The notes beneath the pieces are model-generated. The model was not told the origin of the DNA, ran no database searches, and was given only the letters and a program-made list of their open reading frames with translations. A stretch of DNA of 60,078 nt, the filler included, from Dugesia japonica (lineage: Eukaryota), in NCBI GenBank assembly GCA_001938525.1. It is 4 parts of 4 records of this genome, joined end to end, with 100 filler letters (N's around TTAATTAATTAA, not from the genome) between each part and the next. Parts side by side here need not be neighbours in the genome. Positions count along the whole stretch, not along the records: positions 48,445 to 60,078 come from MQRL01625844.1; 3 more parts are not named here. One strand, 5' to 3'. The position numbers and the translations under genes are program-made. Below are positions 48,445 through 60,078 of the stretch, in pieces; position 1 is the first letter of the stretch; every line of letters begins with the position of its first letter.

Positions 48445-50075
48445 AAATTTATTCTCTTCAGTAATTGGTAGTCTTTTATGGATGATGGTCTCATAATTAT
48501 TCAGATGTTCAGATGTTCTTTTCTTTATTTTTATTATTAATATCACAGTTATGAAATGATTTGTTAGATATAATAAGAATTTATTTCTTGATTCTGTTTT
48601 GTTATTTTTTGTTTATTAGCTTTTGTTTCCAAAATTGATTATATATTATTAATATTGATATAATGCTTGTTGATATCATCATGGTTGTTAATTTTTCATA
48701 TTGTTTCTTGATTCCAGTTCTTTTTGCCAGTTTCTCAACTTTTAACTTAGTAATTGAATCTCCATTTTTATTAATTTTTATAGTAATTTCCTTTTTAGTG
48801 TTTTCAATAATATCAGTCATTACATCATGATTCTCTAATTTCATTTTTGTAATCAAATCTTCTTTTCCATTGGCTCCAATACTTTTTTCGTAGTCATAAT
48901 TGTTGTCAGTGTTGCAGTGCTAAGTTTTAATTCCAGCAGTAAAAGTTTCATTTTCGTTAATAGCATCATAATGCTCAGTTTTCATTTTAATAAAAGAATC
49001 TCTGTTAAAAAAACGTTTTGTTTCGTCTGCACTTGTTATAATTTTAGAGTTCTCATTCTTGTCTTTATTGCTTTCATTTTAAGTATTCTGTTTTATGTCC
49101 TTTGTTAAATTTTATTGGCAGAGAGTATCTAAGAAATTATTTAAATTAACATCAAAATTTGGNNNNNNNNNNNNNNNNNNNNNNNNNNNNNNNNNNNNNN
49201 NNNNNNNNNNNNNNNNNNNNNNNNNNNNNNNNNNNNNTATCTCTTTCACATTAATTGAATCAAAAATAAATCTATTTAACTTGTCATTTTGCTAACAAAT
49301 CTTCTTATTACCATCTGTTTCCAATTTTTGAATATTTATTCTCATAGTTTTTATTTCACATCGTGTTTTCATCCTTTGAATTTCAATTTTTAGGAAATCC
49401 ATTTCAGCCTTTCTATCATATTCTATGTCACATGTTTTGAGAAATGTATGTTTCTTAATCCAGCATGCTTCTTTAAAAGATGCACAATCTCTACTGTCAT
49501 TACGTTGAATGTATTTGTTGTTACCCATTATATTCTTATTACAAAAATGAGTTATTATCTTTTTCTTTTTCGGCTGCTTTCATTACAAGGATTGCTATAA
49601 TCTTGGTCGAAAGCAACAAGGTCTCTATTCTCATTAATTTTGTTATTGTTCTTATTGTAACAATATAATTANGATTATTATTATCATAAAAAATTAAATA
49701 TTTTCAAAATTACGAAAATAAACTAAGGCGTAAATCAAAAAAGTTTTAAAAAAATGTTTCTTTTTAAAATTTTTATTAAAGTAACAAAATCTTTTTCAAA
49801 AAACATTTTTTATTTTTTCAAAATTTTCGAATTTATCTTCTTCAGGAATTGTCGATAAATTTCATATTCGTATAATCGTATACATTATTATTATTTTTAA
49901 ATCTTTTATTATTATTACTTGTGTAGTAATTTCTGTGTTTTTCTCTACAATTATGGTTATTGTTTTCATTTTGATCTCTTCAATTATGTTGAGCATTTTA
50001 AGTGTCAATACTGATTTGTATCTTGAACTTTAATTTTATACTTTGCTTCTATTTAGTATCAGTAAATGGATAGTA

Positions 50076-50464
50076 AGTAGATAGATAGGAGGACACGAGG
50101 ACAAAGTAGGTCAAAGGGGGGACCCCCCGTTGCCATGGTAGCCAATGTAGGTCAAGGTCGTTTCAATGGCAACCGCCTTAGCAACGGTATCTAGGTTATT
50201 TGGTTACCATGGCAACCGTCCTTATCGATGGAAACTAGGTCAAGGTCGTTTCCAAAAAAGTTGCTATGGAAACGACCTTGACCTACATTGGTTGCCAGGG
50301 AAACGACCTTGGCCTACATTGGTTGCCATGGTAACGGGGGGTCCCCCCTTTGACCTACTTTGTNNNNNNNNNNNNNNNNNNNNNNNNNNNNNNNNNNNNN
50401 NNNNNNNNNNNNNGGGGTCCCCCCTTTGACCTACTTTGTCCTCGTGTCCTCCTATCTATCTACT
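50076..50464. mobile_element. Non-autonomous mini-Polinton-like element (MITE), about 313 bp after removing the gap overlap
   Basis: Perfect TIR of about 50 bp (about 90 bp imperfect), AGTAGATAGATAGG...CCTATCTATCTACT, flanked by ATAGTA at 50070-50075 and 50465-50470. AG..CT ends with a 6-bp TSD are Polinton hallmarks. Confidence 0.8.
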
Positions 50465-50734
50465 ATAGTAGCTTCCCGCACCACGCACACATTCACCAAG
50501 CATCCCCATAGTGACGTAATGAAATTTAATCCTAATACATTTAGTTAGGAATTTAAAAATTGCATCATTAGGTAACTTAATTTGGGGTGATTTTTCCCTG
50601 TGCATTTAGTTGGAAAAATTTTTTGCACACAAATGATGTCATACGATTAATTTCATCATCGAGATTTTTACGTAATAGGATTAATTGGGATGATTTTTTC
50701 ACTGTGTATTTAGTTGGAAAATTTTTGTAGGTTT

Positions 50735-52020
50735 TTAAGGTTCAGGTGAATTCGGTCTGAAATTTTCTCGGTGAGATCGAATGTGGTCAATTTTTGACTT
50801 GTTTAGATGAAATTGATCTAATTTTTCCTCGGGATTGGTAATTTTTGGGTGAATTGAGTCCAATTTTTCATCGGTTTTGGTCAGTTTGGGTACTTTTTGG
50901 GCGATTCTGTCAATTTTTGGTTGGTTCAGGTGAATTTGGTTGACAATTTCCATGGCGAGGTCGAATATAACCAATTTTTTCGCTGGTTCAGGTGAATTTG
51001 TACCAATATTTTCTCGGGATTACTCGGTTTGTGTAATTTCTGTGTGAATTTGATCGAATATTTCCTCGGGAATGGTTAATTTGGTCTACAATTGGCTCGG
51101 TGAGGTTAATTAAGGTATATTTTTGGATGGTTCAAGTGAATTTGCTTGATAATTTGTTCGCTTAGATTGAATGAGGTCAATTTTTGATTGGTTCAGGTAA
51201 ATTTGGTGGAATATTTCCTCGAGTTTGAGCAGTTTGGGTAAAGTTGGTTGGGTTTAGGTAATTTTTGGGTGATTCGGTTAAATATTTCCATTGTATTAGT
51301 AATTTTTGAGTGATTGGGTTGAATTCTTTTTAGAGAATAGTAAAGTTGGTTCGGTTTTGAACAACTTAGTCAATTATTTACTCGGTTTAGTCAATATTGG
51401 TTAATTATNTCCTTGGGAATGGAAAGTATAGGTAATTTTTGTAATTCAGTAAAGATTTTCCTCGGAATGGAAAAATTTGGGTGATTTTTGGGTGGATTTG
51501 GTAAATTATTTCGTCGGGTTTGGTCAAATTGGGTCATTTTGGATAATTTGGTCAATTATTAACTCAGTGCTCAGATTTTGGTTGATAGTGTTCAGAGATT
51601 GCTTGACATTGCTCAGATTTTGGTTGATAGTGCTTAGAGTTTGGATGGTTATGGTCCATTATTCATTCATAAGGATAATTTTTCGATGAATCGGGGTAGC
51701 AATTTCTTTGGTAATGGTAATTTGGTCAATTATTTCATTTAAATTAGTTAATCTCATATGATAAAAATACAAGTCGCAGGCTGACAGTGGTCAGAAATTG
51801 GTTCACAATGGTCAGAGATTGGTCGACAGAGCTCAAATTTTAGTTGACAGTGCTCAGAGTTCGGTTGACAGTGCTCAGACTTTGGATGGTTATGGTGAAT
51901 TATTTACTCACAAGGCTAATTTTTCAATGATTTGGGGTAATAATTTTGTTGGTAATGGTGATTTGGTCAATTATTTTATTTAAATTAGTTAATCTCATAT
52001 GATGACAATACAAGTCGTTC
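50735..52020. repeat. Degenerate 21-bp-unit minisatellite with a 240-bp higher-order duplication
   Basis: GGTTCAGGTGAATTTG and TTGGTCAATT units; the block ending TACAAGTCG repeats at 51776 and 52016. Confidence 0.7.
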
Positions 52021-52469
52021 CCGGTTAAATTAAAAATTAGTTGACCTTAATTAAAAAAATGTTAATCAATTTTATGTTTTATAAAAAACTTTAATGTTGA
52101 TTGAGCATTTCATCGATAAAGTTGATTATAATTAATTAGGACAATTATTGGTTATTTTTTAGTATATTCAGCCAGTTTTCAATGGTTTTAGTTGAATATT
52201 TTCTCAATGAGATCAAATTTGATCAATTTTTAGTCAGTTACGGCCTATTTGTTAAGGAATTTCTTAATAATGATCTATTTACTAAGGAATTTCATTGGTC
52301 AAATTTAAATTTTCAACAATTAATTAGTTGCTCCTATTGATTTTTAACATTTATAGTTATAAGTTGATAAAAAAAAGTAAATAAATAACAAATAATAGTT
52401 AATTATTTTCATACATTATTTTCAATAATAGTTTGTTTTCTTTCCATATTATTACATTAACTCATCCGG

Positions 52470-53545
52470 GTAGCACAGTCAAGCTATTTCTCGTGATTGG
52501 AAAATCAAAATAGCCAAGATCATTTAAAGGAACAGAAATAAAGAATCTTCCTGTTGACTATTATAATCAAAAAGGAGCATGAATGGATAGAAGGATCTTT
52601 GAACATTGGTTTAAAAATAAATGGGTCCCAGAAATTCGAGTTTTTTTAAAAAGTAAAGGATTGCCGCAGAAGACTGTTCTGTTATTAGATAATGCTCCTT
52701 GTCATCCAAATGAAAGCATACTGAAAACAGACGACGGTCTTATAACTGCAAAATTTTTACCACCTAATGTAACATCTTTAAGTCAACCTATGGATCAAGG
52801 AGTTATCTATTTAATGAAACGCCATTATCNCAATGATCTCCTTAGAAGCTTTTGCATAGAGAATGATGATTTAATGAATTTATGGAAAAAAATGACAATG
52901 TTAGATGCAATATATGGAGCTGTTAAATCTTGGAACAAAATTAAGCCAATAACCCTAGTTCGATCGTGGTTGAAAATNNNNNNNNNNNNNNNNNNNNNNN
53001 NNNNNNNNNNNNNNNNNNNNNNNNNNNTGGAACAAAATTAAGCCAATAACCCTAGTTCGATCGTGGTTGAAAATTTTGTCAAACGTAGAAAGTAATGTTT
53101 TGGACTCTATAGAACCTTAGATATATAACATTTCAAAATTATGTGAATTAATGAAAATTTTAAATGCTTTTGAATATGCTGATGACCAAAATATTAAGAA
53201 ATGGATGGAATTTGATTTATCTGATCCAGGATTCCAGATACAGAGTGACACGGATATTATTTCAAATCTAATTTCAAATCCGAATACATCGATCAATGAA
53301 ACTTCGACTATAACAATAAAATATTTTTAAGAAAAAGTTGAGATGATATTAGATAGTCATTGAGAAAGTCACTTAAACAAACTAAAATTACCGATTTTTT
53401 AATAAAGCATTGAATATATTTTCATTGTTTTTGTATCATACTAGTATTTATTATTTTTGTTTTATTATTTTGTGAATTATTCGTGGTTTTCGATTATCCG
53501 TGCCGGCCCTCCCCATCATTAGCCAGGATAATCGGGAGTTTACCG
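52470..53545 (+). mobile_element. pogo/Tigger DDE_1 transposon, 3' part with TIR
   Basis: [41 protein letters not shown]; 3' end GGATAATCGGGAGTTTACCG followed by TA. Confidence 0.9.
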
Positions 53546-54832
53546 TATTATCAATAACAGTATTTCATTGTCATTTACTTTTGTTTATTTCAGTTCAATA
53601 ATTTTCACAAAAGTTCCACAAACGTTCACGAATGTAAAATCATGTTTTTATGAGCTAAGATGTGATTAAATCATCCCCATTATTTGATGTGACAATGTCT
53701 GATAATTGCGCAAAGTCCAGAGTTCATTTCAAGATTTGTAATTACTAAGAAGAATAAATTTTATACAGGAGGTTGTATGAAATAAAAGAACAGTAAAAAT
53801 AAATTGACGCAAACTGATACATTTGACTTTGCATAATACTGTTAAGATAATAATTACTTTGTCTGTAGCCTAATGAGATTATTTGACAAGTCTAAACAAA
53901 TCAACATTATCTTAAATGCGCAATCAGATCCAGGAGATCTAAACCATTGAAATTTCAAGAAGGGGTTGCTTAAAACCGATGATTTTATTCAATTTAGAGC
54001 AGTTAGTAAGTTAAGTAGTGTTCTGGTCTAATTATGACTAAAAATGCAGGGTCTGAATAAATGAGGGAGTTTAATGGATCATTTTGCATATTACTGAAAC
54101 TAATAATAATAATAAAAGTTACTTTTCAGGCACAGCTAATAAAGTTTTCATATTCTTCAACTGTTGAAAATGAAGAGACATGTCAGTGTTTAAAACAATT
54201 TCAATTACAAACAACCGAAGCTCCCTAAAATACAAATTTTTATAATGAAATGATTAAGAAATGTTATTTTGTCTAAATCTCTAAAAATATTTTAGTATTT
54301 TCATTTGAAGTGACATTCACATAAATTCTAAATTTATTTAACCCAATAACTGCTATTGTCCTTTTTGGGACGTTATATTTTTTGTTTTAGAAAGTCTGCT
54401 AGTTTTAAGATTAATCTATATATAATTTTTTTTAAAAGGACTAAATTGTTTCTTTTTATTTAATTGATGTCAGCAGTTCCTGGAATCCTTGAGAGGAAAA
54501 TAGATTTAAAAAATTTGCACAGATAATGGTTTATCCCATACCTATAAAAGTAATTTAATTATTGCAATTATTTCAAATTTTAGATTGTTTTGCATAAAAT
54601 TGTTTACATTNTTTAAATGTGTCAATTCAAATGAAAATAAACCGAAATAAAATTTAAGAATATGCATTTGTGAACATTTACAATTTTCAATTATCTTTTG
54701 AATTAATGAAACTTATATTATATATTTAATTTAAAAGATTTTAAAACTTTAAAACGATCACGTTTTTCGATATAGTCTATAATTAGCTAACAAGCATGAA
54801 TCTTGTTAGTATAAATTGAATTATCTTTGTTA

Positions 54833-55730
54833 TTAGGTTGATGAAATATAAANGCAGGTTTTTAAATCTCAACTTTAAATTAGTACAACTCAGCTTATAA
54901 ACAAGTTTCTTAATCGAAATAAAAACCACTAGAATCAACGCATTTTCGTCAATGTTACAAGTTTATTTATACTGGCAGTATAGAATTCAAGAGTTCTTGT
55001 AGCGATGAAGTTGGTGAAGGCGTTGTGGGAATTGTCTTGGTTTTTGAAGCATTTTACTCGAAAAAAGTTGTTCATATGCTTGAAAAAGTGATAGTCAGTG
55101 GACGAGAGGTCCGGCAAATATGGCGGATGAGGCAGAGTCTCGTAGTCCAATTCGTGCAACTTCTGCAGGGTTAGTTGTGCGACGTGCGGCCGAGCNNNNN
55201 NNNNNNNNNNNNNNNNNNNNNNNNNNNNNNNNNNNNNNNNNNNNNNNNNNNNNNNNNNNNNNNNNNCTTTCGTCAATTTGTTGATAATACTTCTCTGCTG
55301 TAATCGTTTTGCCCGGATTCCAAAAGCTGTTATGGATAAGACTGGCTGCAGACCACCAAACAATCCCCATAACCTTCTTTTGGCGAAATGCCGACTTCGG
55401 AAAGTGCTGTGGTTGTTGATCGCGGTTCAACCATTGCACCGAACGTCACCGGTTGTCATATTATAATTCGTTCCAGAAAAGGATCGTTTTTGTTGCGCAA
55501 AACGAGCGAAGATGCAACTTCATAATGCCGATTTTTTTCTAATCGTTCAATTCGTGTGGAACCTACTTATCGAGCTTTTTTGTCTTTCCAATTCGCTTTA
55601 AATGACAAACGACGGTTGATTGGTCAACGTTGAGCTCTTCAGTAACGTATCGTGGGGTTTTGCGAGAATTAATTTCGATTAACTGCTTCAATTTCTCATT
55701 ATCAATGGCTGATGGACGTCTGGCATAAGA
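54833..55730 (-). mobile_element. mariner (DD34D) transposon, 5' truncated
   Basis: *VPHEL, YDNR, ARPHVA, HPPYLPDLSSTDYHFF; TA followed by TIR TTAGGTTG at 54831-54840. Confidence 0.92.
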
Positions 55731-56261
55731 TGAATTTGGTGAAAATTTGAATCTTGTGTTTGCAATTATAATTAATGAAAATTTTAAAACTTTGTGAGTT
55801 TGATCTTGAGTGTTGAGAAATCAGAAAAAATTATTGAAAATAAATCAAATTTTGCAAAAAGGTCGGAAGAAAATTCTTGTTATTCACTTATTCGAATCTT
55901 AAAACATTTAACCAATTAAACTCTTTCTCAGAGTTATGAATATTAAAGGATTGTTTTCATATTATAATTCGATTTATAAAAGATACAAAATTATTTTTAA
56001 TAAGGTATTTATAGTATTCAATTAGTTATTATGAATAACGATATGAAAATGTAACTGGCGACCACAGCAGGACTGTGAATGATGTGATAAGACAACAGCA
56101 TGACAAAAAAATTTTTAGAGGTGTTATTAAAAAAGCTCAAAAATTGATCAATTTTAATATCAGAAAATATGATGGTTAAGGTACAGCAGAAGCTTTAATA
56201 TGGTTCAAGGACATCGAAGAATGGATTATTCATAATGATTTCGATTCCCGTCTCAAATAGT

Positions 56262-56610
56262 CTATGATTCTGGATCATGGAGCAATTCCAGCGGCCTATC
56301 CATTGTCTTGAGAGCACTTAACCAGTTCAATCCCGGTAAGGAANNNNNNNNNNNNNNNNNNNNNNNNNNNNNNNNNNNNNNNNNNNNNNNNNNNNNNNNN
56401 NNNNNNNNNNCCCAGAAATAAATGTCTAGCTTCTTGTAATGAAACATATACTCTAGTAAATTACTACTTCCATATTCGACCCATGCCAACGTTGCAATTT
56501 CGTATTCAAACTCTATGATTTCTGGCCATTTTGGAGATACACATGTTTCATTAATCAGCATATCATAGGACGTTGCAAACTTGTAAGGAAATATAACTTT
56601 ACTCTGGTGT
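56262..56610 (-). pseudogene. Polinton pPolB fragment
   Basis: FPYKFATSY...NLLEYMFHYKKLDI...SLPGLNWLSALKTMDRPLELL, homologous to 34130-34470. Confidence 0.8.
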
Positions 56611-58705
56611 CCATTTTGCGGATATTCTGATAAGACGGAAGATAACGCTGTCGGTAAATAAATGTTAGAATTAGTGTTTTATCATTTAATACTTTATGTG
56701 GCTATTAACGATAGTGCTTTATCGGTGCTATCATTTAAAATCGAGTATGAAAAAAAACAGGCTTATATTACTGACTAAAAGCAATTTATGATATTTTACA
56801 TACGAGTGATTAAGACGAGATACCGCGAAATCTCGTTGGACTCAGGAAAAATTACCGTAACACAGAGGTGTCACAAACGTTTCAGTATTTCAGGTTACCC
56901 TTAAGACAAACAATGATGTAGATATTAATGCGAGAGTGAAGAGTATGGAGTAAATATTTAAATCGAAACGTATTCAGTATATATTAATAGCAATGTGTTT
57001 TACTCGCTTCCTGTATAAATCCTTTCCATATATCTACTTTTTATAAGAGCATACAAAGAAATATAGTAAAACAATTAATAATTACATAAATTTTGTTGAT
57101 ATAAAATTAACTAGTTCAAAATGCGAATCAGAAATAATTACAAGAATCGTAACATTCAATCAGTCTTTCAATATTTATGATTAAATTGAAATTAGAATGA
57201 TGAAATTTATCGATGATAATTAATATTTATACATAAATGCAAAAATTCGTATTATAACGATTTTTTAAAATATTTTTCATAGAATTGAAATCACGGTAGA
57301 TAAATCTTTATTAGTTTGAACAATGATTACCAACCTTTTGGTCTTCGCGGAACTCTAAAAATCAGCCTTTTCCATTATGAACCGCGACAAGCGGCATTGC
57401 TGTCTGTCAATTATCATAAATTTTTAGCTTGCGCAGTTCAGTCAGTCTGGATTTGTAACAAAGTTTTTTTATGTGTTAATTATGAAAAATAAGGAAGTTA
57501 CGTAGCCCAAATTTTTNTATTTTTGTATAGAAAATTAAAAATATGAGAAGAAAAAATTCCACCATCACTTTTTTGCAGTTTGTCATGTTATTAATAAATT
57601 TTTAATCAAATTATTTTTTATTTAAATTATTTTTTAAAAACTTTCAATTTTGCTGCCCGACCAATATATCAGCACTCAATAATATATGCAGTTATACCTC
57701 GTATAATGCGTATCCAAAATCTGAAATTTGGAAACAAATATAAATAAAGCTTAGTTAAGTTACTTCTGTATAAACAGCGCGTTACACGGGGTTCTAGATA
57801 CGCGTTATATGGAGGTTAAAAAAAAGCAAAATTCGTACATTTATTTGAATATAACACCATTAGGTAACTACGGTACTTAAGCATGAATAATATCTCAAAT
57901 ATGTCAAATTTGCATTACTACTGTCTTAACAGATGACAAATGTTGAAATAATATAATACATATCTATTAATCTGAATTATACAAAAATTGTGTATAACTT
58001 ACTTAAATTCTTCTTTTGTTAAATTTTTAAATATTTGCAAATTATCGTCACGAATTAGCCGAAAAACCGCTGAAATATGATGGTTCTCAAGAACTCCTCT
58101 ATCATTATACAACAAGGCTAATTTCGAACTAAATAAAGTTATAAATAATATATAGATTTAAATTAATATTTTTTATTATTGAACTACATTTTTTACAATT
58201 AAGGATTTAAAATTTAAAACTCTACATACTCAATAATAACTTGATAAAAATAACTCAACAATTGAAATTTAATCAGAAGGTGATTGAAGCAACACTGTTA
58301 AAAGTTTACTAAGTTTTAAATGTAATTTAATTAGATTATATATTTAAAAATTTTTAATTTTTTTTTATTAAAATTTATTTTAAATTCGTTTAAGTTAAAT
58401 TCGTTATATTTCTGCATGCAAAATTTTAGAAATTTTAGCAGGAAAGAAAGGTAATATTTTTACAAAATATTTTTTGATATTTTTTATCTTATTTTTTATC
58501 TTAATATAGTAACTCTTTATAATAATATAACCAAATAATAAAAACAGCTAATTTGATCTGATTAAATATGGAAAAATTTTAAAATAAAATAATTTAAATT
58601 ATTCCTCTAAATTATATTTTTTAAAGAACCGAAATTCACATTTAAATTTTCACTGACAGATTTCAAATTTCTGCCATCTTCGTACACTTTAATTTTGCAT
58701 TTTTC

Positions 58706-59843
58706 CAGTAGTGTATTGGGGCCTGAACGTACCAGAACAGCGTTCCGGTATATTTTTCCAGTAAAGAATTGTTTTTAATTTCCACTGAAAATTATATTTT
58801 AAATTGACGAATTTGAAAAAACATTTCAAAAAATATGTGAATTAATAGAGGATTTATCTTTCTTTGTTTCTTTTGACTTTTCTAAAATAAATAAACATCA
58901 AGTGTTCTGTGTTTGAAATATTACATACCATATTATCAAACTACAAATTCCGACAATGGAGCTAAGGCGCCCATGCGAACTAGTGGACTTACGTTCGAAT
59001 CTCATCAATTACTATTTCATACCGCCACGCTCATTAAGCTGTTGTTTAGATTATATTATTGTGTATAACGCCCACATCTTTTGCTTGTTCATTATATATA
59101 TAATATTAAAGGTAAAAAATAAAAGTGTTTAAATATTTTTGAAGTCAATCATTTTCAAAATTTAATTTAGTTTAATTATATTTTAGGAACTTAAATATAA
59201 GCATATATACAATTNATTATTGAAATATTATTTNATAAAAAATAATAAAAATTAATTTTTTATATTTAATATTATAAATGAGCAAAAAACGTAAACAACC
59301 CACTTTGGACAAAATCTTTGAAAAAAATCTCAAAACTTAAAACAACATAAAGAAGATGTAGTAGTGCTAGAAAACAGGATAAATCAAATGGACATTTTAC
59401 CAACATCAACAGAAAACTTTCAAAAACAAGAAGAATCACTATTAATAAAATTGGCTGAGTATTTGGGCAGCAGATATGATCTTCGAAAAAAAATATATAC
59501 TTGGCTAAAATGCGATTCCGGAAAATTAGGATGTCTGACTTGTTCAGCTATTCAGACTTTAGAACCTTTAAAGACGCAGGAGTAAGAGTCTCAAAAGAAT
59601 GGAGTGGCACTAAGGTATCAGCTTATGGTAAGGATAAAGCTTCACAACTTACTTCTTTGCGGAAAAAAATGTATGAACATTATAATAGATTTTCACATAC
59701 AACAACTGAGAAAATCTTAAAAGAAGCAGACAATAAAAGGCTTGAAGTTATTGTAAATAAAATGAATGAATCTAAAATTTGTAACACCAGAAAAGTTTTA
59801 GAACTGAGTATTATATTGCTAAACATGATCGCCAATATTCTGA
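58706..59843 (+). mobile_element. hAT transposon 5' end with ZNF862/KIAA1586-like transposase N-terminus
   Basis: CAGTAGTGTA...GAACGTACCAGAACAGCGTTCCGG end; MSKKRKQPTL, YTWLKCDSGKLGCLTC, SKEW, SLRKKMYEH...SH; interrupted at 59844. Confidence 0.7.
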
Positions 59844-60078
59844 AATAGATAGATAGTGGCACACGGGCACAATTTTTAATGAGTTATCGCGCACCCCACC
59901 GGGAGGCTCGGAAACACATTGCGCTTGAGCTGCGTTTTTTTTACATGATTTTTGTGCTCGTTTTTTTTCTTAAGATTTTTGGGATCAAAAAAGTTTTGAT
60001 CGGATTAAATTTTTTTTAATCGGATCAGTTTTTTTATCCTGGGTGTGTGTTTATTTTTAAATTTAAAATTTTGTGTGT
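59844..60078 (+). mobile_element. Left terminus of a Polinton-like element (runs off the window)
   Basis: AATAGATAGATAGTGGCACACGGGCACAATTT matches the reverse complement of 45576-45607; 59960-60015 matches about 45460-45516. Confidence 0.7.

Follow-up and report, generated by a model that had tools for sequence, protein, structure and literature searches.

The ends of Ac/Ds and En/Spm and the IR/DR ends of Sleeping Beauty all carry subterminal repeats that are bound by transposase. Target-site duplications are typically 8 bp in hAT elements, and they are 9 bp in FB and 7 bp in Galileo. In Galileo, the THAP domain binds repeated sites within the tandem repeats of the long foldback-like ends, and the authors of that work propose that the transposase owes its specificity to such multiple binding sites (PMC3688188). 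In Herves, the transposase binds a subterminal motif present in repeated copies (PMC3143072), and Tetris is a non-autonomous foldback element in which internal repeats of the ends expand into satellite arrays (PMC4079207).

Two host-factor motifs also bear on the locus described here. Published consensus sequences for the X-box are GTNRCC-N(0-3)-RGYAAC, GTTGCCATGGCAAC and GYTRYY-N(1-3)-RRHRAC, and RFX usually works via a single site near the gene start (PMC3414849). In C. elegans, every validated X-box lies at most 500 bp from the start, and two or more X-boxes were found in only eight genes (PMC3245922). The sequence YCAAGGYCR is the monomer site of Ftz-f1/NR5A (PMC7239656).

We analyzed a locus of Dugesia japonica (GenBank assembly GCA_001938525.1) within a window of 60,078 nt, which joins four parts of this genome, and we identified the locus as a small non-coding foldback-type DNA transposon (MITE). 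As in Drosophila FB, Galileo (P superfamily) and Tetris, almost all of the element consists of its arms, which contain tandem sub-repeats and pair into a hairpin; however, the arms of those elements are hundreds to thousands of nt long, whereas this element is ~0.3-0.4 kb, with arms of ~100-150 nt and a repeat unit of 31 bp. Its 6-bp target-site duplication is unlike those of FB and Galileo, and the element is therefore foldback-like in build only and is not placed in those families. It resembles Herves and hAT elements in having a short word in both orientations just inside both ends, with a copy in or next to the terminal repeat. It differs from them in its bipartite unit with a 14-nt palindrome and in its 6-bp duplication, and its sites are putative, whereas binding has been seen for Herves. 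To our knowledge, a bipartite unit that includes a 14-nt palindrome is unusual among known examples of subterminal repeats. The object is a foldback-like MITE with subterminal repeats, of a kind that is already known: an ordinary element with one curious feature.

Boundaries and build of the element

The piece examined comprises positions 48445-60078 of the window (MQRL01625844.1); it is 11.6 kb long and AT-rich, with ~29% G+C overall. The element occupies positions 50076-50464, or 389 positions as written, including 50 N. Its left terminal inverted repeat (51 nt, 50076-50126, plus strand) is 100% complementary to the right one (51 nt, 50414-50464, minus strand). The word ATAGTA abuts the left inverted repeat at 50070-50075, and a direct reading of the sequence gives the identical word at 50465-50470; based on base frequencies, such a 6-nt match would occur by chance with a probability of ~7e-4. 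No longer or shifted duplication fitting both element ends was found around the ATAGTA flanks, and the alternative duplications considered (TA, 8 bp, 7 bp, and 5 bp with shifted ends) were ruled out, as the flanks do not fit them. Inverted ends together with the flanking ATAGTA are the signature of a cut-and-paste insertion, and they bear out the view, put forward when the sequence was first read, that this is a mobile mini-element.

Inside the ends, a left inner arm of 74 nt (50101-50174, plus strand) is 92% complementary to 50290-50363, with six mismatches. As a single strand, positions 50076-50363 are predicted to fold into one hairpin of -109.8 kcal/mol, compared with -37.3 kcal/mol for shuffled sequences (z = -16). 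At its center is a smaller hairpin (50236-50285) with a perfect 19-nt stem (50236-50254 paired with 50267-50285) and a 12-nt loop; this central hairpin includes two YCAAGGYCR matches and part of the fourth X-box-like palindrome. The arms are internally repetitive, they form one long hairpin, and there is little or no unique middle, as in foldback elements. No Pfam family matched the longest open frame of the element. We base the assignment to foldback-type miniature inverted-repeat elements on the inverted ends, the ATAGTA duplication, the repetitive hairpin arms and this open frame with no Pfam match.

The right end is interrupted by a run of 50 N (50364-50413), and the same 26 nt stand on both sides of it (50338-50363 and 50414-50439). 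A second 50-N run in the piece (52978-53027), located within a transposase fragment described below, has 47 identical bases on both sides. Because their flanks overlap, unlike those of the N runs of 67-75 in the piece, which show no overlap, the 50-N runs look like unclosed scaffold joins of overlapping contig ends. Such a join within the element is a plausible outcome of assembling a hairpin repeat. For annotation, the value of recognizing the element is that it can be masked and that it explains the assembly break inside it.

Organization of the repeat units

The 31-bp unit consists of a 17-nt word that holds AGGTCAAGGTC, followed by a 14-nt palindrome, and it is present inside the element in tandem and inverted copies. 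In both arms, a unique tip of 25 nt is followed by a variant of the AGGTCA word within the terminal repeat, then by a short G/C palindrome (G6-A-C6), and then by alternating palindromes and AGGTCA words. The G6-A-C6 sequence is a perfect palindrome of 13 nt at the inner edge of the left end (50116-50128), with its image at 50336-50348, and in both arms it separates the terminal AGGTCA word from the first X-box-like palindrome. This word (six G, one A or T, six C) is the sole strongly G+C-rich word of the element and occurs once per arm.

In the left arm, one 31-bp unit (50143-50173, plus strand) combines a 17-nt AGGTCA half with palindrome 2 (50160-50173). It is followed by an irregular stretch of 62 nt (50174-50235, plus strand), which is found only in this arm and forms an unpaired bulge in the predicted fold; this stretch carries the exact palindrome 3 (50203-50216) and a degenerate palindrome at 50222, and positions 50203-50217 are the exact inverted image of 50321-50335. 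In the right arm, the units form a tandem array (50260-50336, minus strand) with a period of 31 and 2.5 copies (TRF score 126, 89% matches), in which palindromes 4, 5 and 6 (50260, 50291 and 50322) alternate with inverted AGGTCA halves (50274-50290 and 50305-50321).

Match to RFX and NR5A consensus sequences

The sequence-only reading had listed six X-box-like palindromes, and all six were recovered where it had placed them, as 14-mers with at most one mismatch from GTTNCCATGGNAAC. Those starting at 50203 and 50322 are exact matches, whereas those starting at 50129 (palindrome 1, 50129-50142 in the word scan), 50160, 50260 and 50291 each have one mismatch. The six sites are packed within 207 bp, and the rest of the 11.6-kb piece contains no further GTTNCCATGGNAAC site with two or fewer mismatches. 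By chance, such sites are rare: none of 100 shuffled sequences had a match, and ~0.01 sites are expected from the composition of the piece. However, all six repeat part of a single 31-bp unit, directly or as its inverted image, and they amount to about one independent event. For a random repeat unit, a match this close to the RFX optimum has a probability of ~1e-6 per position. The words fit published RFX consensus sequences, as had been proposed; under the stricter consensus GTNRCC-N(0-3)-RGYAAC, both halves fit only at 50203 and 50322, one good half-site is present at 50129, 50160 and 50291, and none is present at 50260. The X-box word is internal only and does not occur in the terminal repeat.

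Repeats of TAGGTCAAGGTCG are interleaved with these palindromes. The copies already reported at 50148 and 50236 (plus strand) and inverted at 50273-50285 (minus strand) were found again, along with a fourth copy that had been missed, which has one mismatch (50304-50316, minus strand). The larger half-unit to which they belong occurs as direct repeats at 50102, 50143 and 50231 and as inverted images at 50278, 50350 and 50426; its terminal copy, CAAAGTAGGTCAAA (50102-50115, plus strand), lies within the perfect terminal repeat. Both the perfect terminal repeat and all of the internal units contain the AGGTCA half. The piece contains four exact matches to YCAAGGYCR, at 50152 and 50240 (plus strand) and at 50281 and 50312 (minus strand), where 0.16 are expected; these are the TCAAGGTCG and CCAAGGTCG words, all four of which fit the consensus exactly. 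The earlier description of AGGTCA as a nuclear-receptor half-site thus stands as a sequence match, although the motif is more precisely named as the Ftz-f1/NR5A consensus. At the level of sequence, the match of these words to the RFX and Ftz-f1/NR5A consensus is real.

Variation between arms and units

When the 74-nt arms are compared, 5 of the 28 X-box columns differ, whereas only 1 of the 46 other columns does (Fisher p = 0.026). The difference is stronger when the identical outer 25 nt are included (p = 0.0066) and weaker without the two columns where the consensus has a free N (p = 0.048); these arm-versus-arm statistics rest on six differences, two of which fall at free N positions. The three clean 31-bp units, set against one another, show 0-1 differences over the 17 positions of the AGGTCA half and 2 over the 14 of the palindrome half. 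On these small numbers from one copy, the comparisons point away from the palindromes as the constrained part of the element. The AGGTCA half, in contrast, is nearly invariant and is common to the terminal repeat and the units, which suggests constraint. Motifs no better conserved than their spacers across copies had been named as grounds against the enhancer reading; within the element, where arms were compared with arms and units with units, the X-box words are not better conserved than their surroundings and are in fact the least conserved part, which speaks against that reading to the extent that a single copy can.

Proposed role of the repeats

We consider it moderately likely that the palindrome and AGGTCA units are subterminal recognition sites for the transposase of the element's own family. 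This reading is based on the perfect inverted ends with their flanking duplication, the hairpin arms, the period-31 array, the mirror-image arrangement of the repeats, the presence of the AGGTCA half in both the terminal repeat and the units, the clustering of arm differences in the X-box words, the lack of any protein-family match in the element's frames, the transposon-rich surroundings, and the precedents of Galileo and Herves. The subterminal repeats would act as docking sites that give the family's transposase its specificity, and several transposase protomers on the repeats would pair the two ends. With a 31-bp spacing, or about three helical turns, the sites would all face the same side of the helix. 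The 14-nt palindrome would suit a dimeric DNA-binding domain and is a possible dimer site; even so, the AGGTCA half would be a better candidate than the palindrome for the core transposase site. We infer that transposase binds the repeats and, likewise, that their match to host-factor sites is incidental. The closeness of the unit to the RFX optimum and its exact NR5A consensus might nonetheless count against docking, and a transposon selected for germline expression might carry just such a pair of gonad- or cilia-related host motifs within a unit.

It is doubtful, by comparison, that host factors use the repeats, with RFX on the palindromes and a monomeric nuclear receptor of the NR5A/Ftz-f1 type on TCAAGGTCG. 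The array would then be either a relic promoter, once used by the parent element in ciliated or gonad cells, or a dispersed enhancer that could be co-opted. In well-studied animals, both the RFX and the NR5A family have roles in the gonads, a setting that would suit a transposon. Two of the palindromes fit the RFX consensus on both halves and three on one, the consensus of the unit comes close to the optimal palindrome, and the exact fit of all four NR5A-type words exceeds expectation, each of which favors a host-factor role; in addition, plant MITEs that amplify transcription-factor motifs have been documented (PMC5950925). Like those motif-carrying plant elements (PMC5950925, PMC7329337), this one is a miniature inverted-repeat element with an interior that fits the consensus of a host transcription factor; however, the plant cases draw on numerous copies, on enrichment of the motifs and in some instances on binding data, whereas here there is one copy, in an animal host.

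Several observations argue against a host-factor role. The sites are all copies of one unit, so the number of X-box-like sites is no sign of selection, and the X-box words are the most variable words between arms and units. Two sites of the element fit the full consensus of the RFX X-box of ciliary genes, and the unit consensus is near the classic palindrome; however, ciliary X-boxes are usually single and promoter-proximal, with validated ones typically within ~500 bp of the gene start, whereas the element has six, in a transposon, with spacers that are better conserved than the sites. Repeat-rich DNA surrounds this copy, and provisionally no start-bearing exon is recognized near it within the piece. 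The mirror-image layout in both arms also fits end recognition and not the needs of a promoter. For these reasons, the mobile enhancer for ciliated or germline cells that the sequence-only reading had proposed does not seem the favored interpretation: one repeat unit builds both arms, and no gene start appears nearby. Motif scans will list six “RFX sites” here that are one repeated word. If the family were abundant and its copies bound by RFX or NR5A, this would be an animal miniature transposon that spreads high-affinity sites for ciliary or gonadal factors.

The repeats could instead be a by-product of slippage or unequal exchange within hairpin arms, with only the outer tips recognized by transposase, which we regard as unlikely. 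The number of units does differ between the arms, with two and the irregular 62-nt stretch on the left and three in clean tandem on the right, and these unequal numbers point to repeat turnover; the end repeats of Tetris, which expand into satellite arrays, offer a precedent (PMC4079207). However, the terminal repeat and all units share a nearly invariant AGGTCA half, and slippage alone leaves unexplained why every copy retains a good 14-nt palindrome.

Recognition by transposase and binding by host factors might also be combined, although we think it quite unlikely that the end-recognition repeats double as a composite module for RFX and NR5A/Ftz-f1. In one version, host RFX could be recruited as a synapsis cofactor or for gonad- or cilia-specific activity; in another, copies of the element could spread arrays of six X-boxes and thereby rewire ciliary or germline genes. 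As a variant, the DNA-binding domain of the transposase could read the X-box-like palindrome in the manner of an RFX winged helix.

The predicted hairpin is very stable, and a read-through transcript of it would be a candidate substrate for small-RNA production, siRNA or miRNA-like, as with other MITE-derived hairpins. We view such a role as very unlikely. A relaxed Rfam scan returned matches on both strands, but these were only generic plant and animal miRNA precursors with scores far below gathering (best 33 bits versus 107); matches to the best-matching family were almost the same on both strands, which any hairpin would be expected to show, and a small-RNA role would leave the repeat content unexplained. 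At gathering thresholds, Rfam returned nothing for the piece. Most improbable is that the repeats serve a replication origin as iterons or, as suggested earlier, as host-factor sites: repeated palindromes with a hairpin are also found in some origins, but inverted ends with a target duplication are a cut-and-paste signature, the scanned reading frames flanking the element on either side contain no Rep-like or other domain, and nothing was found in the viral collection.

Searches for relatives

Within the 11.6-kb piece, we found no second copy of the element, no other occurrence of its ends, and no longer partner that shares these ends and encodes a transposase. The remaining inverted repeats in this stretch are AT-rich chance pairs. 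Exact-word scans with the end and the repeat unit returned nothing from the viral collection and nothing from prokaryote genomes. Nine metagenome matches were rejected as GC-rich bacterial hairpins that have only the G/C palindrome in common with the element and no similarity beyond it; the 13-nt G/C palindrome accounts for these chance matches. The contigs L001 and L005 are bacterial and come from gut metagenomes, and no contig retrieved was human DNA.

A 71-aa open frame of the interior yielded no candidate in a word-indexed protein search. Using phmmer, we obtained eight matches to this frame, all of which were rejected as long repeat proteins that owe their inflated scores to the summing of many weak stretches; the best of them (P0032) has 10 of 28 residues in common per repeat. 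P0032 is translated from an ENA metagenome contig on which a 156-bp satellite forms a 3-kb array (L010:1501-4674), and this DNA was also rejected as a relative, as the satellite has neither X-box-like nor AGGTCA words. Translation of the L010 locus under the bacterial table does not give P0032 due to in-frame TGA codons, suggesting that the protein was called with another genetic code. In the literature, no relevant report of transposons that carry X-box or RFX motifs was found.

Genomic surroundings

The sole host exon recognized in the piece is an internal exon of 126 nt that encodes part of a PDE1-like phosphodiesterase of the calcium/calmodulin type (58128 to 58003, minus strand). It has AG and GTAAGT borders and matches PDE1B structures with E = 8e-14, and no further PDE signature was found elsewhere in the piece. 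As the one clear stretch of host coding sequence, it marks the source as an animal genome. The element lies ~7.5 kb from this exon, in repeat-rich, probably intronic DNA, and it is not at a recognizable gene start.

Other transposon remnants are present to the right of the element. A fragment of a pogo/Tigger-type DDE_1 transposase (52583-52975, in a region extending to 53038, plus strand), which contains the second 50-N run, is 68% identical to its best relative. A mariner-type transposase remnant (54938-55820, minus strand) includes a weak helix-turn-helix match (55566-55820) and a Transposase_1 match (55267-55439); it is broken by a run of 71 N (55196-55266), and the reading frame differs between the two sides of the run. 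Near the end of the piece, two overlapping open frames (59322-59845, plus strand) that have no Pfam match include a basic region as well as a Cys-x-x-Cys stretch, and they may loosely resemble the N-terminal zinc-finger part of hAT-type transposases.

Base composition also differs on the two sides of the element, with ~22% G+C to the left and ~35% to the right. Directly to the right of the element, a degenerate minisatellite-like region (50740-52000) has periods of ~21, 42 and 50 bp and a G-over-C skew of up to +0.49, and similar blocks of 21-bp repeats are found at 51566-51644 and 51782-51879.
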